NCBI GenBank assembly: GCA_024704765.1
Contig: JAKMXF010000133.1
Location: forward strand, 62,001 to 126,000
DNA from: Oopsacas minuta
Taxonomy: Eukaryota > Animalia > Porifera
Reading direction: 5' to 3'
DNA length: 64,000 nt
Shown here: positions 25,986-37,131 of the stretch, piece after piece
Layout: each line of letters starts with the position of its first letter
How positions within the stretch are numbered: the first letter of the stretch is position 1
Position numbers and translations under genes: made by a program
Notes under the pieces: generated by a model
The model's database searches: none
What the model saw: only the letters and a program-made list of their open reading frames with translations
Told to the model about the DNA's origin: nothing

Positions 25986-28900
25986 TTATGTAAGACTATC
26001 CAAAAAAGTACTCAACTTTTCTTGAAAACTGCTACCGACACAATCCAGCATACGAACCACAGGGAACTTGTCAGATCCAAAATAGCCATTTTCGAAACCG
26101 GAACTAATTAAGAAATTGTTTGGAAATGAAAGCGACACATTCACCACACGTGCTGTCACATTATTCAGGAATGATAGAGTTGAGTTGAGTTGTATAAGTG
26201 GCATACATGGCTGCAGAGGTGACAAATATATAAGCAACCAATTTGTGTCTTGTGAGAAAAATTCCACAATTTTTTGTGTCCAATTTCTTAACAAACACCT
26301 TCTTAGGAAAACTGGAAATCTTTGAGAATCCACCGAGAAAATAATCGTATTATCTTCAGTTCCATTTGGAACAATATTGTACATAGTTCCTGTCTTTGGT
26401 TCCAGTTCAAGTGTCACTATTTCTGTTTGAGAATACCTTTCAAAAAGTGGCACAATAGTTTGGGAGGGTGACAATTCATCAGGCAGACTTAGTTCTACTA
26501 AGATAGGACACAATTTTAGTTCCGAATTAATAGTTCCACATGTGCTATGTATATAATTCAACAAGTCTGTTAGTAGTATAGCTTCTTGTAGTTTATTAAG
26601 GACACTGGTCTGCTCGAAATCTAGAAAGATTAGGAAATTACGCGCGTAAAGTTTACCCGCCTAACTGGAACTATTCTTAAAATTAGGCGGAATATTTTCA
26701 CAGGTCTTGGGTGGCTTATAGTGACCCCATGGTGTCAAAAATTGGTTCAAAAGAGGAACTTTTGACCTATAGTCCCACTTTAGTTCCTCATAACACATTG
26801 CAAAACGGAACTAATCATATTTTGTCACCTAGTTGCGTCATAGTTCCACTTCACCAATTAAACACAAACATTCCATACGGTCTTACTGTTGTGTGGAAGT
26901 AGCTGGTTGCTATGGTGAATGGAATGTTTCCCTCTACTAGAAGAGATAGAGTCATCACTGACAGGAACATAGGCTGCATTAGGACCATCTAGCCTACGCT
27001 CTAGCGTCTGGAATTGAGAGGGTGCGGGTACAGGGTAGGGGACTGTCTCTGTGTGCCGATGTAATTGTCTCAGAGCATCACACACGAATAGATACAGTGC
27101 ACGAATAGGTTCTGGTATTGGTTCCATATTGTTAGTGTCAGACATGTCGTCATCATTGTCACCCTGTTGGATACAGTGAAGAGAAAGCCATCTGTCCTCT
27201 CTTAACTGAATATGCAGCTGTCCGTCACATACGTATACGGGGCGGACTTGTTGCTAAAAATAGAATAGGAACCATAAATGTTATTCGTTGTTTGGAGGAA
27301 TGGAATGGCAGTATTTGTGGCATGAATATGGCATGGAAATGAAGAGAATGTAACATTTGTGGCTTACTTGAGAATATGCATCTATCATCAGCTGAGAAAA
27401 CACCTCTTGATGAAAGAAAGTCAGCTGAGCTTTGTACAGCTGTGTCTGCCACTCTGGGAGGTCAGGAGGTGGTCTGAGACCGTACCACCCATCCCTCTCC
27501 ATTTGTTTCCAGTCCAAACGGGGAGAGGACCGGACTGGCTCAGTATGGAGGTACACAAACAGGGCAGATCTAAAAGGTGTGAAAATATGATAAATTAATA
27601 TGTTATCGGCTACGTAACTATGGAAACTCCTGAAATGTTACCTGGTTAGCAACTCCTGTGGAATGTCTAACGTGACAGGACAAAATGCCACTCCTCTGCC
27701 ACTTGTGCCTTTATGAGATGGATCAGCTGTTTTACGTACTAAGAATCGTCCTTTCTCTTGAATTCTAGCTCCAGCCGAGTGATAGGTGAGATCTCCCATT
27801 ATGCAATCCTATCAAGTAAACGAGTAAACAAACAAGTAAACAAGTCAACAAATCAATAAACAGGTATATAAATATCAAGGTTGAAACCGCTCAAACCGAA
27901 TATCAGTATCCACGAATAGTAGCCTAACCGAATACTGATATTATTCGCTTGCAACCTTGACAAACAAGTAAACAAACAAGTAAACAAACAAGTAAACAAC
28001 TTACCTGTGTTCTAACAAGTCTCCAATTCTCTCTTAAACTCCATAAACAATTATGAAAAGCATTTTCACTTCCATTTTTAGCGCCTAAACAATTCTTCAA
28101 ATCATTAGCCCCGCTCAATAAAATATCAGCTGATTTTAAAAGTGTCTCTCTTGCTTTCATCAAAGATTTGCCAGAAGTGGCACGCTTATGTGGCAGAAGT
28201 GGCACTTCCAGTGGTGTCTGTCCCGATACGGAAGCCACTGCCTTTAACTCCAAATAGTTAGGACATTTGTTTACGATCTAGAAAACAACAATTTGTGTAA
28301 ACAAAGACAATTAACAACAAAACCTAAAAGTGTCTGAAATTAGTGACCCTATGGGTACATCCAAATACGCACCCATTGGCCAATTCTGAGGTGACAGGAC
28401 CTTTGTATAAATACAAAGAATAATTCAGAAAATTGTGTCTGTTAAGTAACTAAAGAGGAAATTGATTTGGCGCCTGTATTCACAGTTAATAAAGCGCCAA
28501 ATGAAAATATAAAAGGCGCCAAACGAGAAGAAAGAACGCTAAAGTGACAAGGTGAAATTTAAGCGCCATTCACTGGTAAGATTATAGATAAAATGGCGGT
28601 ATTATAACTACAAAGGAATCTGACACTTATCCATTGTGTCGCTAATAAATGGCGCCTGTTTAAATAATTCTACTAATCAAATTGAAACATAAAATGAGGA
28701 AAAGATATTGGCTGAAATATTTATGTATACAAAATGCGTTAAAAGTGGCATAAAGTGGCATAAAGTGGCATAAAGTGGCATAAAGTGGCATATAAAAACT
28801 AACTATTTCAAGAAATAATCAGAATTAATCTAGTATTCATTGGTTAGCTAGTATGGATAAGGAGAGCCATTCAACAACATTATAGTGATTCAAAATATTC

Positions 28901-31900
28901 AGCCACTCTTCAATTCGAAATCCACTTCGTGTGCCACTTATTAAAGTTCCTAAGTATGCCACTAGCGCGGTCTTATCCTCTGATAAACAAACCAATAAAT
29001 AACAAAATAATAATGTATTAAAAGCATATATTATAAACCCATAAATTGATATAAACATAACAATATTCGGCTGTCTGGATAGATTCAATGGTTGTTATTT
29101 TGTTTAAATTTACATATGATTAATCTGGAACCTTGTGTCAATATTAAGTTATAGATAAGCGGACACATTTGACCTTCTGTTTGTACACAGGTCCACTATG
29201 CAGTCACTGGCGGCCCAGGGGGGAAGCCGGTCACACCTGTCAATTGTGACACAATTTCTTACCAAATGTGTCCTAATTAAGTGTCGTATTCTGTATTCCT
29301 TAATAGAATGGCAGGAAAATCAGAAGGAGCCAGTGCTGAACGGATAAAAGAGCTATCGGACATGTTCAAGAGCTTTGACAAGGACGGAGACGGTAGGATT
29401 ACCTTTTTAGAATTGAAAGAGGCCCTTGAGAGTATCGGTGATTACAAAAGTGAAAAAGATATCAGAGATATGATCAACGAAGTGGACCAAGACAAAAATG
29501 GCACAATTGAGTTCAACGAATTCGCGATATACTTTGATAAAAATATTAAAGAAATGCAAGCAAGACGAGATGAAATGGAACTAACTTTTAACACCTTTGA
29601 CATTGATGGAGATGGTTTCATAACTTTCAAAGAGCTGACAACAGTGTTCTCAAGTATGGGTGAGGATATGAGCGAACAAAGTGTTAAAGATATGATAACA
29701 AAAGTGGACTTGAATCATGACGGGAAATTAGACTTCAACGAATTTACTAAACTTTGGAAAAAACTGAATACAGAAGACGACAATTAATATATTAATAATA
29801 TTTGTTACTATTTTTAGATTTGTGTGTGGTGAATTATAAGAAATTACCCGCCAAATATTCCAGCTCTGTTAGTATTGTCGACTCATAGCAACGGTTATGG
29901 TATCTAGGAATGTGGTGATTAAAATATAGATAGACTCAATTGGGAGATAAAGACCAATTATCATTCACTAGACAAAATGTGAAAACCCTAAAATTGCTTC
30001 GCGTGCCATATTTTCTCAGAAATTTGGAGACACAATTAAAATAGCTCATTTTGCGACGAATCACTATCAACCAATCAATTCGTTGTGCAGAACCCACGAT
30101 TTCACATTTGAACGAAGTATGTGATAAAGGATCAAATAGGCCTTATAGTAATTGAATAAATAAGCGCTAAATCACTTAGATACATAAATATGGACAATTT
30201 GGAAATAGGCCTTGAGAAATATTCCCTAGAATATGTGAAGACACAAGTTGGTAAGTAGCCAATCAAGTAAATGGGTTCGGAGACCAATCAAATTATAGTA
30301 AATTGGCCAATGGAATTATAGAGTTGTGGCAAACGAAATTTTGGACTCAAAATTCTCAAAAAAATTCTTACAAAAATTCTCAAAATTCTTATATTACAAA
30401 TAAAGCTAGGCTAATATTATATTACAAATGATTCCAGATACCAATTTAATTTTGGCGCTAAATTAATGATGATTAGTCTAAGACATGATTGCATAACAAC
30501 AGATCAGGTGGAATGGAATTAATTAGCTGAGGTAAATTCCTTAAGTTTGATTGCTTAAAATTATCACAAAATGTGTTTGAATATTCAAAAACGGTGTGTG
30601 ACACATTTGTGCCACACAAAAGGAAATATTACCCAAAAGTGGTTGTTCAATAAATGAAAATTCTTTAATCAAACTTAATTAGAACTGAATTTAATTAATC
30701 CACAGCTAAATGGTACAAACAACCCGCCATAACTTAGCGCTAAATTTATTCCATGTAACAAACCCAAATCAGCCAATCAACAGCTTTGATCCTAAATATG
30801 CCCAAGCTTTAGCCAATAAGAATTGAGTATTTAAGCTCGAATAATACACAATTTTATATAACATTAAGCTGTGAGAATTGTGGCATAAATATTCATATTT
30901 TAAAGCTATTAAGATAATCTAATTAGTGGAAATTAGCAGGTATTTATCAGCTTTAATTAATTTAGCATTTTTTCTTTTTGTGTCACAGAGTGACTGTTGA
31001 GCCACTTCCTGTTGAATTAACCACTTTGGGCAGGAAATCATAGTGTCATTTTAAGTGGCGCATTAAACCAATACGACATACTTCACACCTTATATATTAT
31101 TCTCTTAAATAGAACGAATGACAGAGAGCATAGACAACTACTTCACACCTCAGGAATTAGAAATGTTCCGCCTAACATTCAATATATTCGACAAAGACAA
31201 CGACAGCAAGCTCCACCTCGAGGAGGCCAAAGTGGCATTGGACAAAATAGGCGAGAAATTGACACAAGAAGATTATGTGACACTTCTAGTGATGTGTGAA
31301 TGTGTCAATATGACAGCAATCGAATTTCCAATCTTCAAATTATTGGTATTTAAAAAGCGGGAACTTGAGATCTACACAGCTGACACAATTGACAATTTTG
31401 GCGGGCTTAATTCCCGCGAAGAACTTCAAGAAATTATGCAAGAATTAGGCGCCAATAAAACTGATGCGGAATTCGATCAGATGTTTCGAGGCGCCAAAAT
31501 GAATGAAGACAATGAAATAACTCTGTTGGAGTATGTTCGAATTCTAAATATGAGTAATCAATAGGTGTTTGTTGTTGTTGATTATTGTTTATTTGTATAA
31601 AGTTATTAATAAAATTACAATCAAATCAAACAGTCAGTTAAGCTAACAATTGGATCGGCTAACGAATCTCGTAAAAGTGTGACATATCTAACTTAATAGT
31701 GTCACATCGGGATCTGGCCATGTTAACTGGAACTAATTAACACTTTGCATAGTTCTGTTTCTGGACAAGTGGCCTGGTTAACAGATGGCTCTATTAAACG
31801 GAGAATTCAATATGAATAAAATGTGTGAAAACTTCAAAGAAGCCGAACATTAGAATTTAATAGAAAAGTATTTCAAACCTTTTATGTGTCAGTCAATGGT

Positions 31901-34900
31901 TTCATATATGAATAATGAAAAGTTATAAATTCTAACTATTTTATTGAAGTTAAAGAAAAATTATTGAGTGTACTCATTGGATATTTATTCCTTAGGTAAG
32001 TAACCTCCCCCCATATAGCTGCCAGTGGTCCCACTATTGGTCCACCATTACTGGCGCCAAACTGCCACTTCATGTAGTGGTCACTTCCATAAGGTTCACT
32101 TTGGACAATCTCTTCGATGGTAGTTATAAACAAGTCTGAATGTATATGTAACGTCAAATCGACTGCTGTCTATGAAGACTTATTTTTTCGTATTTCTAGC
32201 GAATTACATGTAGTCAGGGGTTTATACAGGAATTTCTGGGCCGGCACCTCTTTTACAGTGGCTTTCTATGGATGGCACAGTTTTGGGTGGTAACACATTG
32301 AGTCTGATGTTCGGCACTTTGTTTCCTTCCTGGATGCTGAAATGACACTTTTAGGTGCCCGCCAAGCACCTAGATAAACCCCTGACTTGTAGGTGCAATA
32401 CTTTTTGTTTACACATAACTGTGTTTTATATTAACAGTGAACCGTTTTGTTATTATTGTTATTTATGTCTCTAACTTAAGGGATATTAAAATGCTCCGTA
32501 AAATTTGTTTCTCCGTCAATTTTCTGAATTCATTGGCAGCACTGGTTTGATTGTGTATGTAAGTATGGATTATGCCACCTTTAGAAGACATAAAATGGCA
32601 CAATTATATAACAATGGAACAATGAATTAAGTAATTAGAATAACAAAATACAAAAGTAACAAATTATATCTCAAATTCCAACACCCAAATAATCAATTCC
32701 AAGAAAACTGGATACTATTCGAATAATACACCACTTATAAATGGCTAAAGTGTGTCGTCAAAACATTTGACAAACTTTAAAGATACAAATGAAATCAGTG
32801 AAATGGATACTTCATAAGAGTGAAAGTATAAATATGAACAAATTCAAAAATAGGCCATTAATTCCAATTCCAACTTCTCTAATACAAAGCACCAATCAAA
32901 ACGTAAGGAAACCTCTGTTATTCTTCAAATTTATAATTTTATAACTAATAATATTATTTAATTAAGCGCTGAAGTTATATCCCGCATTTCCCCGCCTGAA
33001 TTACGAAGTTATACTCTAATACGCGCCTAAATAAAATATAATATATTATAGTTCTGATTTGTGTTTAGATAAAATGGCACAAAAAGTTAATGATGACAGT
33101 CAATTGGCTAAGGAATATGGTATTACAGAGGAACAAGTGGGAGAGTACAGAGAAGCTTTTAGATTATTCGACAAGGACGGAGATGGTACAATAACATGCA
33201 AAGAATTGCTAGCTGTCCTGAATAGCTTAGGACAAAAATGCACCGAAAAAGAGGCAAAGGAAATGATAGCAGAGGTGGACACCGACCAAAACGAGACAAT
33301 CGAACTTGGCGAATTCATACAGATTATGCGGAAAAAACATTCAAAAAAGACCAAAACTGAGGAACTTAAAGAAGCATTCAAATGCTTTGACAAAAATGGT
33401 GACGGTCACATCAGTCACGCAGAACTCAAAGAGGTAATGAAAAGTATGGGACAAGAAATGGACGATTCACAAATCGAGCAGATGATAATAGCAGCTGATA
33501 CAAACTCTGATGGTGAGATAGATTTTGAGGAGTTTAGGCGTATGATGTCTGAAAGTTAACTGTATTTGTTTCCTTAGGCTGTAATTGTTTACTCTTTTGT
33601 GTGTTATGCTAGTATGTGTGGAATATATTTAATAGTATATACTGATTGGCCAATTACTGAAGACACAGGACTAGAGGGTAAACTTATTATTTCACACACA
33701 CATTTTCAAAGTGTCAATCGATTACACATAACTGAACAGTTTCACACACACACATGTATACAGTTAAAGGTATTCGACCCCTTACCCTCTTTAATACTAA
33801 GCATGCCAAACTAAAATCTGATTACTCTGATGTATAATATAGCTATTAGTTATAAACCAGAGAATAAGCGTGAATAAGACTCATTTATGGAGATTGACGG
33901 ATATCTTTGTTCCATGGTCAAATATGAATATCACAAAATATTCGCAATCCTGAAATGGTCGAATACTTTTGTCCTTTAACTGTATGTGTGTATACAGGGG
34001 AGGACATGGTACACACCTGCTAACCTGAGTGAAGAAAATCTTAAATCACCATCTGTGTTGACTTGAATTTTACTAAAGTAATTTCTGTGGATTATTGAAA
34101 GTATATTATTCTGCAAAATATCCATTCTAGCAAAGAAAGATAAAAGTGAATTTTCGAATATTCTTAGTCATTCTAAAATGTTAAAATCGAATTTAACATC
34201 CCTGTTTACCACTATTTAACAATTGGAAGCTAATCTCTAGGATTATTTTGAACTGTTTACCAAAAGGTGTCAAAATATGATTAATCATATGATAAATCAG
34301 TGTATATATATGTAATAGAATGTATTGACCAATAGAATTACAGTCTACATCATTACTAATTAAATTACAAACATTCCACCAAAACTAATTAGAATTGGAA
34401 ACCTACAATCTGATTGGTTAAATACATTGTCTACACCCCTGTTTGTGGCATTTTTGAACTGTGCCCGCTTGGACACAATTTATAACAGATGCCATTTACA
34501 AAATGGGCCCCAGAATCAAATGAAGATAACACCTAAATGTGTCCAAATTCTCAAAAACAAAAGAACTTAAAAATTCATCAAATTCCATTCTCCAAAAGAG
34601 TTGTCGTAATGATCACCGAATTTGTGTTTTAAGTGTCATATACGAAACTATGGTGAATAGCTATATTACTGTAAGGATTCCATTAGTATAAATATGGGTA
34701 ATCTTATTTCGAATATACTACAAATATATTCTATCTTGTGTGTTAACGACCTCACAACAACAACAACAACAACAACAGGTAGTGTTTTTTCATTCGATTG
34801 ATTGTAGTGATATTTGGCATACAGTGGAATCTCCCAAAACGGACAATCCTCTTCTCCAACGGACAGAAGCGATGTCCCCTACGTGTCCGCTGTTCGGAGA

Positions 34901-36882
34901 CTCTACTGTACATAGTACCAATAAAGTGACATATATATCTATAGTTCCATATTCAAATTTCGTGTGTAATACGTGTATTTTTCGATTTCCACATACATGA
35001 AAACCCAACTCAAACAATTGAGATTTCGACTAACTGATCGCCGGTAATCCCAATCTCTGACCTGATCCAACGGAAGTCAGGGCCTTTGGACCAATTGGTG
35101 GTCCACATACGACCGAAGAGTGTGCACAGAAGGTGTTAAAATGGGTACAAGTAGGGTCTAAGGTGGAATCTCTGAATTTTGACCGGTGATATAATTTCCA
35201 AGAATAATACATACTTGCATACTTACAAAACCAAAAATATTTGGAGAATAATTACACTAATTAGATTATCATTGCATTTTTATGATTCTTCATAAACAGA
35301 AGAAACAATAGCAATATTTATACGTACAAATTGAGTTATATAAGGTTCGGAATTGAAATATTTATGTACCATTTCATGCCACTTTAACCCTCTCAGGTGT
35401 ACACGTATCCAATGCCAGTGCCATATGTATATACTTACTGGTACCACACAAACATTCCTGACACTTTCCCGCCATTATCCAAATGTTCAGGCGGGTAAAT
35501 AACATAATGTCCCAATTCTATTATTAGAATGGCAGAAAGTAAACTTCCAGACAAGAAGGTGTCAGAATACAAAGAGGCTTTCGAAATATTCGACAAAGAT
35601 GGAGACGGTAGAATAACAGCTGATGAACTGAGACAAGTCGTTGAGAGTATGGGGAAAGTTTGCACCCCCGAGGATGCCAAAAAAATGATCTCCGAAGCTG
35701 ATAAGGACAAAAATGAGACAATAGAATTCGGGGAATTCGTCACTATGATGGAAGAAAGCATGTCCAATGCGGGCGACGAAATGCTGAAAGCATTCAAATT
35801 CTTTGATAAAGACGGAGATGGAAAAATCACAAAAGATGAACTCAAATTGGCTATGAAGGAACTTGGGGAAAATATGTCCGATGCTGAGATTGACGCTATG
35901 ATCAAGTCAGCTGACCTTGATGACGATCATCAAATTGATTTTCAGGAATTCAAAAATATGATGGGGAAGGAGGACGAAAAGTAGACTTAACACCTCTCTG
36001 TAGCTATTTTTAGAATATTTAGCCTATTAGGATTATTACTCAGTACTCTTAGGAATCTGTATTGATATATGCTACTTCATTATAACACTTATCTGCCACT
36101 TATATATGCTACTTTATTATGATACCTATCTGCCACTTCATTATGACATCTATGTTTGTGTACCGACTTGGTTTCAGTTCTAGAAGTTGGCACGGAATTA
36201 GTAAATTTGAGATACTTTAAAAGTGTATTTAGGCGGGGATTAACGAAAATAGGCGCGTTTAAATTTCAACCAATCAGAATTTACCTCTAAGACATCACTC
36301 AAAACGGAAATTTCCATCAAAGCTTTTCTCAAACTTTCTTTTGGCGCCACAAACTCAGATTTTGATTGATTAATTCCAACAGCTAGATTCCTAGTTTTGT
36401 CCCTCTCCTCTGACAATCTCTCCTCTTCACTCTGAAATAGTCCCATGTCCAAATCTCTACTAAATTCTAGGCGCTGAACATTACGAGACAGCTGTTCAGA
36501 GAGTGACAATTTTTCTTCATAACTAAAAATAGAATGTTACCATAAATATGTGCTTCTCAATATTTTCGCCCGCGGACACCTATGATCAAATTATGGGAAC
36601 CACGGCTATAAATAGACTGTCACAAGTGTCGTTTAAAATCGGGATATCCAACAAGCCCTGAGTAGACACCCCAGATACCCAAAACTGGCACCTATGACCC
36701 CTACTGTCCCCCATGGACCGCAGGTAGGAATCGATGATTTAGCTGTTTGTTATGCTACATTTGTTTACACAACTTTTGTTTGTTTACATTTCTTGTGCTT
36801 CCCAAGTGAATTCTTGTATGAGTCTCCTCTGAAGAGGTTCAATACTAATTAAATTAGATGGACACCCTGTGTTACCTGACAT
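25986..36882 (-). CDS. MED17: Mediator subunit 17, about 7 exons (36882-36788, 36522-36285, 28277-28005, then exons down to 25986); intron 2 = 28278-36284
   Basis: Spliced sequence: LISIEP...[21 protein letters not shown]...[17 protein letters not shown]|IVNK...LLKSA..L...[10 protein letters not shown]|[13 protein letters not shown]...CPVTLDIP|...[21 protein letters not shown]. This is colinear with MED17 motifs (LSMSQNLARLAQRIDF, GDLSYRSAG, WQTKLEAAQ), and the intron phases match. Confidence 0.88.
28741..28791. repeat. (aaagtggcat)x5 tandem repeat
   Basis: A perfect 10-bp unit repeated five times. Confidence 0.85.
29308..29787 (+). CDS. Calmodulin-like EF-hand protein 1 (intronless, nested in MED17 intron)
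   Basis: Four canonical loops: [36 protein letters not shown] and [12 protein letters not shown]. Confidence 0.92.
   Translation: MAGKSEGASAERIKELSDMFKSFDKDGDGRITFLELKEALESIGDYKSEKDIRDMINEVDQDKNGTIEFNEFAIYFDKNIKEMQARRDEMELTFNTFDIDGDGFITFKELTTVFSSMGEDMSEQSVKDMITKVDLNHDGKLDFNEFTKLWKKLNTEDDN
31118..31564 (+). CDS. Degenerate calmodulin-like protein 2 (nested)
   Basis: CaM-like helix spacing ([13 protein letters not shown]..., [16 protein letters not shown]). Only EF1 is near canonical. Confidence 0.7.
   Translation: MTESIDNYFTPQELEMFRLTFNIFDKDNDSKLHLEEAKVALDKIGEKLTQEDYVTLLVMCECVNMTAIEFPIFKLLVFKKRELEIYTADTIDNFGGLNSREELQEIMQELGANKTDAEFDQMFRGAKMNEDNEITLLEYVRILNMSNQ
32212..32387. mobile_element. 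176-bp MITE-like element
   Basis: The TIR agtcaggggtttatacagg matches the reverse complement of cctagataaacccctgact at 17/19 positions. Both sides are flanked by tgt. Confidence 0.55.
33074..33559 (+). CDS. Calmodulin-like EF-hand protein 3 (nested)
   Basis: [53 protein letters not shown] and [12 protein letters not shown]. Confidence 0.93.
34822..34908. mobile_element. 87-bp Tc1/mariner (pogo/Tigger-type) MITE
   Basis: TA|cagtggaatctcc...ggagactctactg|TA, i.e. imperfect ~24-bp TIRs starting CAGT with a TA flank on both sides. Confidence 0.65.
35529..35984 (+). CDS. Calmodulin-like EF-hand protein 4 (nested)
   Basis: [36 protein letters not shown] and [12 protein letters not shown]. Confidence 0.93.
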   Translation: MAESKLPDKKVSEYKEAFEIFDKDGDGRITADELRQVVESMGKVCTPEDAKKMISEADKDKNETIEFGEFVTMMEESMSNAGDEMLKAFKFFDKDGDGKITKDELKLAMKELGENMSDAEIDAMIKSADLDDDHQIDFQEFKNMMGKEDEK

Positions 36883-37087
36883 CTGATTGGTGGAAATATC
36901 TAGTAAACATATACGAGCAAATAAGTAAACAACAATAAAGGTGTGAAAATATGATTAATAGAACCAATCATATGAAATATTGCAGTGAATAAAACAACCA
37001 ATAGAATGTTTGCTTTCTCAATTTGGAACTAATAATATTAAACGCCAAAAGGTGTGAAAACTAACCCAAGAACTACATTGATATACC

Positions 37088-37131
<44 letters not shown>

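Follow-up and report, generated by a model that had tools for sequence, protein, structure and literature searches.

Intron 27b of the human NF1 gene holds the genes EVI2A, EVI2B and OMG, and genes nested in this way are a described trait of glass sponge genomes as well. In Aphrocallistes vastus, 2,432 genes (12.4%) are nested, many of them in conserved arrangements; the annotation of Oopsacas minuta contains 83 nested genes only, a number ascribed to the annotation method (PMC10282587). The O. minuta genome is compact: its v1 assembly comprises 61.46 Mb in 365 scaffolds (PMC10282587, Table 1), with introns averaging 341 bp and intergenic distances averaging 2 kb (PMC10280926). Here we analyze a locus of this genome in which four intronless calmodulin (CaM)-like genes, hereafter c1 to c4, lie in antisense orientation within the predicted second intron of the gene encoding MED17, a subunit of Mediator. 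It is located in a window of 64,000 nucleotides (contig JAKMXF010000133.1, positions 62,001 to 126,000 of the forward strand), to which all coordinates refer unless another contig is named. The words calmodulin and Mediator do not occur in the main text of PMC10282587, and the MED17 nest is not mentioned there. We read the locus as an ordinary nested-gene locus of a glass sponge genome, with four independent single-exon CaM-like genes antisense in intron 2, and give this reading a probability of about 0.8.

A scan for open reading frames (ORFs) identified four complete single-exon EF-hand ORFs, all on the plus strand and together spanning positions 29308–35984: c1 (29308–29787, 159 residues), c2 (31118–31564, 148 residues), c3 (33074–33559, 161 residues) and c4 (35529–35984, 151 residues), each with its own ATG and stop codon. 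As a control for ORF length, intron 2 was shuffled 200 times; the longest ATG-initiated ORF then had a mean length of 80 codons and never exceeded 134. The GC content of the four ORFs (37–41%) is above that of the spacers (31–34%), and base composition is even across the intron borders.

The host interval, the predicted intron 2 of MED17 on the minus strand, extends over 8,007 bp (28278–36284), has GT...AG borders and is in phase 0 on both sides. The four guests lie wholly within it, between canonical splice sites, as expected of nested genes. Intron 2 is about 23 times as long as the mean O. minuta intron and roughly 30–110 times as long as the neighboring MED17 introns (265 bp for intron 1, then 196, 72, 114 and ~266 bp for those downstream of intron 2), and the nest makes up 73% of the MED17 gene span. 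The successive spacers across intron 2 measure 1030, 1330, 1509, 1969 and 300 bp. Since this spacing equals the ordinary intergenic distance of the genome, intron 2 looks like a normal gene-dense piece of genome that happens to be flanked by two MED17 exons. A preliminary description of this DNA had placed four co-oriented CaM-like ORFs at 29308, 31118, 33074 and 35529, and all of them were recovered, with EF-hand matches in Pfam; the exon ends that it gave (SDVLE at 36285 and IVNK at 28277, both in phase 0) are read directly in the sequence, and its intron of 8007 bp is indeed oversized next to the others of the model (72 to ~266 bp). Its claim of intronless CaM-like genes placed antisense in one oversized MED17 intron is borne out as far as sequence goes.

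The gene model for MED17 comprises about seven exons on the minus strand, from 36882 down to 25986, and sums to ~658 codons, next to a full length of ~650 residues for MED17. Exon 1 (36788–36882), which is defined by an open frame and splice signals only, starts with an ATG at 36882 and contributes 31 codons plus 2 nt before the donor GTAAAC. Exon 2 (36285–36522; acceptor TTTTTAG, donor GTAAAT) adds 1 nt and 79 codons and ends with SDVLE, and exon 3 (28005–28277; donor GTAAGT) encodes 91 codons, from IVNK to LVRTQ. Upstream of exon 3, the sequence TTTTCTAG, also read as TTGTTGTTTTCTAG, provides an AG acceptor with a pyrimidine tract. The donor following 36285 and the acceptor preceding 28277 are canonical, and they are phase-matched. 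Further downstream, exon borders were placed by a script that enumerates open GT-AG paths, and joined translations were used at this step only. The resulting model places exon 4 at 27642–27808, exon 5 at 27368–27569, exon 6 at 26887–27253 and the last exon at 25986–26620, with a TAA stop codon at 25986–25988; the 3' border of exon 6 (26887 or 26879) and the 5' border of the last exon (26620 or 26612) are ambiguous.

Homology searches for MED17 were made exon by exon. In the Protein Data Bank (PDB), exon 3 aligned with residues 113–180 or 129–196 of solved MED17 chains (E=0.18; a three-row profile lowered this to 0.03), exon 4 over its whole length with residues 201–251 (E=0.21) and exon 5 with residues 285–336 (E=0.14). 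Each of the three matched the three mammalian MED17 sequences of this database, among them chain 7emf_Q; the matches are weak singly and collinear together. Because exons 3, 4 and 5 agree on one protein in the proper order, which we judge, rather than compute, to be very unlikely by chance, the assignment to MED17 appears safe. Exons 1, 2, 6 and 7 gave no match in the PDB or in Pfam. In the assembly searched (61,460,524 bp, 365 contigs), exons 2 and 3 are each single-copy. An ORF 82–83% identical to exon 3 is present in a related assembly, and a HMMER search with exon 3 against 1.8 billion representative proteins yielded just an 88-residue ORF of a related sponge and one spurious repeat protein.

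Note that MED17 intron 3 is filled, at 27860–28004, by a low-complexity repeat of the TTGTTTACTTG type. Two ORFs of related assemblies (P0001 and P0003) run through the exon 3 donor into a similar CLLVCLL-type stretch, so that even the sequence of intron 3 seems to be kept in a close relative. At the other end of the gene, the spacer between the stop codon of an upstream DNAJA-like gene (~37212) and the MED17 ATG (36882) is very tight (~330 bp) and contains a (GTT)n microsatellite at 37085–37130.

The four guests encode proteins of 148–161 residues made of EF-hand pairs without any other domain, which places them among the calmodulin-like (CML) proteins. Pfam recognized four EF-hand_1 stretches in each of c1, c3 and c4, with E-values of 1e-30 to 1e-36 (EF-hand_1, EF-hand_7). 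The score of c2 was weaker (EF-hand_7, E=2.6e-7), with only EF1 and the C-terminal pair detected. All four loops of c1 are canonical. Three are canonical in c3, in which Glu replaces Gly at position 6 of EF2, and two in c4, in which position 6 is Glu in EF2 and His in EF4. In c2, the D-x-D-x-D...E pattern of Ca2+ ligands is retained in EF1 only: EF2 is unrecognizable, EF3 is shortened and EF4 starts with Lys. Note also that in the c2 lineage (31118–31564 and P0006–P0009) an invariant MCEC motif takes the place of the EF2 loop entry. These loop differences would fit functionally differentiated Ca2+ sensors. The exact proteins c1 and c4 are present in NCBI, and c2 and c3 were not found as exact proteins in the public protein collection; c2 may for that reason be unannotated.

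Canonical CaM is encoded elsewhere in the genome, by a single uninterrupted ORF on contig C210 (C210:195247–195675, corresponding to L004:1489–1935). This protein of 149 residues scores 279 bits against vertebrate CaM, from which it differs by ~16 mismatches in 149 residues (~89% identity). The closest nested copy, c3, aligns end to end with CaM at ~151 bits (solved calmodulin chains), and in a maximum-likelihood tree c1–c4 all fall outside the CaM group; none of them reaches the identity of ~85% or more expected of a canonical calmodulin. Further intronless genes for CaM-like proteins, centrin and light chains were noticed on contigs C341, C266, C303, C255 and C309.

The relationships of the four copies point to an old cluster. 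The pairwise identity among c1–c4 is 24–49%, and for every copy there are separate orthologues in other hexactinellid assemblies, at ~50–72% identity. For c1, there are seven (71–72% identity), including a transcript of Vazella pourtalesii. For c2, there are four of equal length (59–63% identity), and the P0008 cluster adds two members of the lineage, one of them truncated; the degenerate loops of c2 recur in its orthologues, and 70 columns of the alignment are invariant. The likely orthologues of c3 (P0011–14) are 61–65% identical to c3 versus 54–60% to c4, and one is again a Vazella transcript. Those of c4 (P0010 and P0015) show 52–58% identity. In the tree, c2 and its relatives form a clade whose stem is very long (100/100 support), P0010 and P0015 join c4 (91/96), c3 and c4 with their relatives stand apart from the rest (89/78), and c1 is placed elsewhere. 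Glu at position 6 of EF2 is found in all nine sequences of the c3/c4 clade, and the degenerate EF2, EF3 and EF4 loops together with the MCEC motif in every sequence of the c2 clade. The odd EF loops are, on this comparison, conserved lineage traits.

The c1-like and c3-like relatives from V. pourtalesii are complete Trinity ORFs (EukProt). This sponge belongs to the Rossellidae and Oopsacas to the Leucopsacidae, both within the Lyssacinosida; a sponge from a different family of this order therefore transcribes orthologues of c1 and c3. When the DNA was searched for repeats left by recent tandem duplication, only the EF-loop coding segments proved similar to one another, and the spacers share nothing. 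Because each copy has orthologues of its own, because mutual identity is low and because no spacer DNA is duplicated, we take the four genes to be an ancient, stable hexactinellid cluster and not recent duplicates.

These results bear on the preliminary description in two ways. It had stated that EF2 carries Glu in copies 3 and 4, that EF4 carries His in copy 4, that three loops are degenerate in copy 2 and that none of the four is canonical calmodulin; all of this was correct, the last point being apparent from the ~151 bits of c3 versus the 279 bits of the C210 protein. It had also portrayed the genes as a graded set of Ca2+ sensors expanding inside a housekeeping gene. The gradation stands insofar as the loop differences are real and conserved. 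The expansion does not, given the mutual identity of 24–49%, the separate orthologues and the lack of duplicated spacer DNA; the EF-hand phylogeny, in which the four copies do not form one clade, likewise speaks against it.

We also asked how the orthologues are arranged in other glass sponges. Clustering was judged from the size of the longest contig reported for each orthologue and not from reading the contigs themselves. Orthologues of different copies share an identical longest-contig size in eight cases: c1, c2 and c3 orthologues at 23,456 bp and at 346,028 bp, c1 and c3 at 176,711 bp and at 283,429 bp, c1 and c2 at 458,329 bp, c1 and c4 at 1,688,171 bp, c2 and c4-like orthologues at 1,226,633 bp, and c2-like and c3-like genes at 6,540 bp. 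The contig of 23,456 bp is from V. pourtalesii, and those of 346,028, 176,711, 6,540 and 1,688,171 bp are ENA contigs. The equal sizes suggest that the CaM-like cluster is syntenic across glass sponges. A search for related loci, made with the c2 family in metagenome and genome collections and with exon 3 in the genome collection, returned one unrelated EF-hand locus (L013).

Several results weigh against the nested arrangement or against parts of its interpretation. Exons 1 and 2 have no MED17 similarity detectable by phmmer or in Pfam, and the Pfam family Med17 (PF10156) matched none of the MED17 exons, even at E≤10. A six-frame scan of the genome with this family found nothing either; since the same scan matched no control genome, this negative is uninformative. 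The HMMER search with exon 3 among the 1.8 billion representatives returned no full-length O. minuta MED17 model, which seemingly means that the public annotation of this species does not join the exons modeled here. As regards the guests, the AlphaFold model of c2, obtained from a five-row alignment, is too poor to use (predicted local distance difference test score, pLDDT, of 52), the differences in Ca2+ binding between c1–c4 are inferred from loop residues only, and the co-location of orthologues is suggested by the equality of contig sizes.

The CaM-like genes could instead be intergenic: transcription of MED17 would begin at exon 3 or a short way upstream of it, driven by a promoter located in 28278–29300, and the ORFs at 36285–36882 would be a separate small gene or non-coding. 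Such a layout would agree with the behavior of exon 2, which alone gave no match in the PDB or in Pfam and retrieved from the ESM Atlas generic helical bacterial look-alikes only, which are uninformative, and with the failure to find any annotated protein that combines exon 3 with exons upstream of it. However, the alignment of exon 3 starts near MED17 residue 108. A gene beginning there would lack ~107 N-terminal residues; exons 1 and 2 together hold 111 codons. Moreover, an AG acceptor and its pyrimidine tract precede exon 3, which has no in-frame ATG at its start, and the phases of the donor and the acceptor match. We consider an intergenic position of the four genes unlikely on these grounds. 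The N-terminus of human MED17, which runs MSG...ISIES...LSMSQ...VLYDVLSIVRD, presumably resembles exons 1 and 2 and their junction with exon 3.

That a foreign 8-kb segment was misinserted between two MED17 exons during assembly is very improbable: nothing specific favors it, its sole basis being an intron ~30–110 times longer than its neighbors, and against it stand a stretch free of Ns (assembly gaps), exons and a cluster that are single-copy in the genome, a uniform composition across the intron borders and the frequency of nests in the clade. Least probable of all is that the nested ORFs, or at least c2 with its three degenerate loops and weak Pfam scores, are decaying pseudogenes, a view in whose favor it can be said that the public protein collection lacks exact copies of c2 and c3. 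None of the four reading frames is interrupted, the c2 orthologues match c2 in length (at 59–63% identity), in its degenerate loops and in 70 invariant columns, and Vazella transcribes orthologues of c1 and c3, so that conservation has largely refuted this explanation already.

The remainder of intron 2 was surveyed as well. An interspersed repeat resembling a miniature inverted-repeat transposable element (MITE) occupies 176 bp of the c2–c3 spacer (32212–32387); it has 19-nt terminal inverted repeats (AGTCAGGGGTTTATACAGG and CCTAGATAAACCCCTGACT), and at least 40 copies are scattered over the genome. A second interspersed repeat, of ~390 bp and devoid of terminal inverted repeats, lies in the c3–c4 spacer (34035–34426). 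At least 40 copies of it were scored, at 75–91% identity, from 525 first-look candidates, and it may be a SINE-like element (short interspersed nuclear element). A scan of intron 2 with Rfam identified no family. The remaining ORFs of the intron, on both strands, matched no Pfam family and were treated as chance ORFs rather than genes.

Short repeats were noticed near both ends of the intron: a (AGTGGCATAA)n microsatellite at 28744–28796, just within the end next to exon 3, and a 37-nt short tandem repeat at 36065–36162, within the 300 bp that separate the c4 stop codon from MED17 exon 2. Neither AATAAA nor ATTAAA, the polyadenylation-type signals, occurs in the 500 nt that follow the c3 stop codon, nor in those that follow the c4 stop codon (35985–36484). 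Because no such signal is present in this interval, the 3' end of c4 may overlap MED17 exon 2 in antisense.

The organization of the locus allows a mechanism to be proposed. Transcription of MED17 pre-mRNA would run across all four guests, and splicing would remove them together as intron 2. Each guest would be driven by its own promoter, located in the 1–2 kb spacer upstream of it, and host and guest transcription might interfere with each other. The proteins c1–c4 could serve as Ca2+ sensors, or as partners of the light-chain type, that differ in their targets and in their affinity for Ca2+. Both the number of Ca2+ sites and their affinity would decrease in the order c1 > c3 > c4 >> c2; c2 would be a light-chain-type partner largely independent of Ca2+. 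A far-reaching extension would make the MED17 nest and its four guests a fixed, class-wide feature of the Hexactinellida, couple their antisense transcription to the output of the Mediator head, and turn c2 into a Ca2+-insensitive adaptor that is peculiar to glass sponges and linked to the Ca2+-based conduction of impulses in syncytial tissue; we regard it as quite improbable.

The main value of the MED17 locus lies in the correction of annotation. In the public annotation, MED17 and two of its guests, c2 and c3, are probably absent or cut short. Core genes that seem to be "missing" from the compact O. minuta genome may likewise be hidden by nesting, a point to weigh when genes are claimed to have been lost in glass sponges. 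In addition, c1–c4 constitute a conserved, differently degenerated set of CaM-like proteins that could be used in studies of Ca2+ signaling in a syncytial tissue with Ca2+-dependent impulses.

How, then, does this locus compare with known systems? The nested copies belong to the same fold family as canonical calmodulin and differ from it in being only 24–49% identical to each other. They are closer to the CML/CALML proteins, with which they share a length of ~150 residues, four EF-hand motifs, the absence of any other domain and an identity to calmodulin of 45–55%; CML/CALML genes, too, are often intronless and arranged in tandem, and single EF loops are weakened or lost. Unlike CML/CALML proteins at large, the c1–c4 lineages have so far appeared, among the top matches, only in hexactinellid assemblies, and the c2 lineage is far more divergent, as seen from its very long stem in the tree, its shortened EF3 and its invariant MCEC motif. 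As a nest, the locus resembles that of NF1, in which a single long intron of a large or housekeeping host also accommodates several small antisense genes. By contrast with the NF1 nest, all guests of MED17 are paralogues from a single family, and the genome around them is very compact. The closest likeness is to the nested genes described in glass sponges (PMC10282587), which have the same single-exon guests in a host intron and the same compact genome, and which include this very species; such nests are described there as frequently conserved and as escaping the O. minuta annotation. The nested architecture is already known for glass sponges, and the MED17/CaM-like nest is a further case of a described phenomenon and not a new kind of system.

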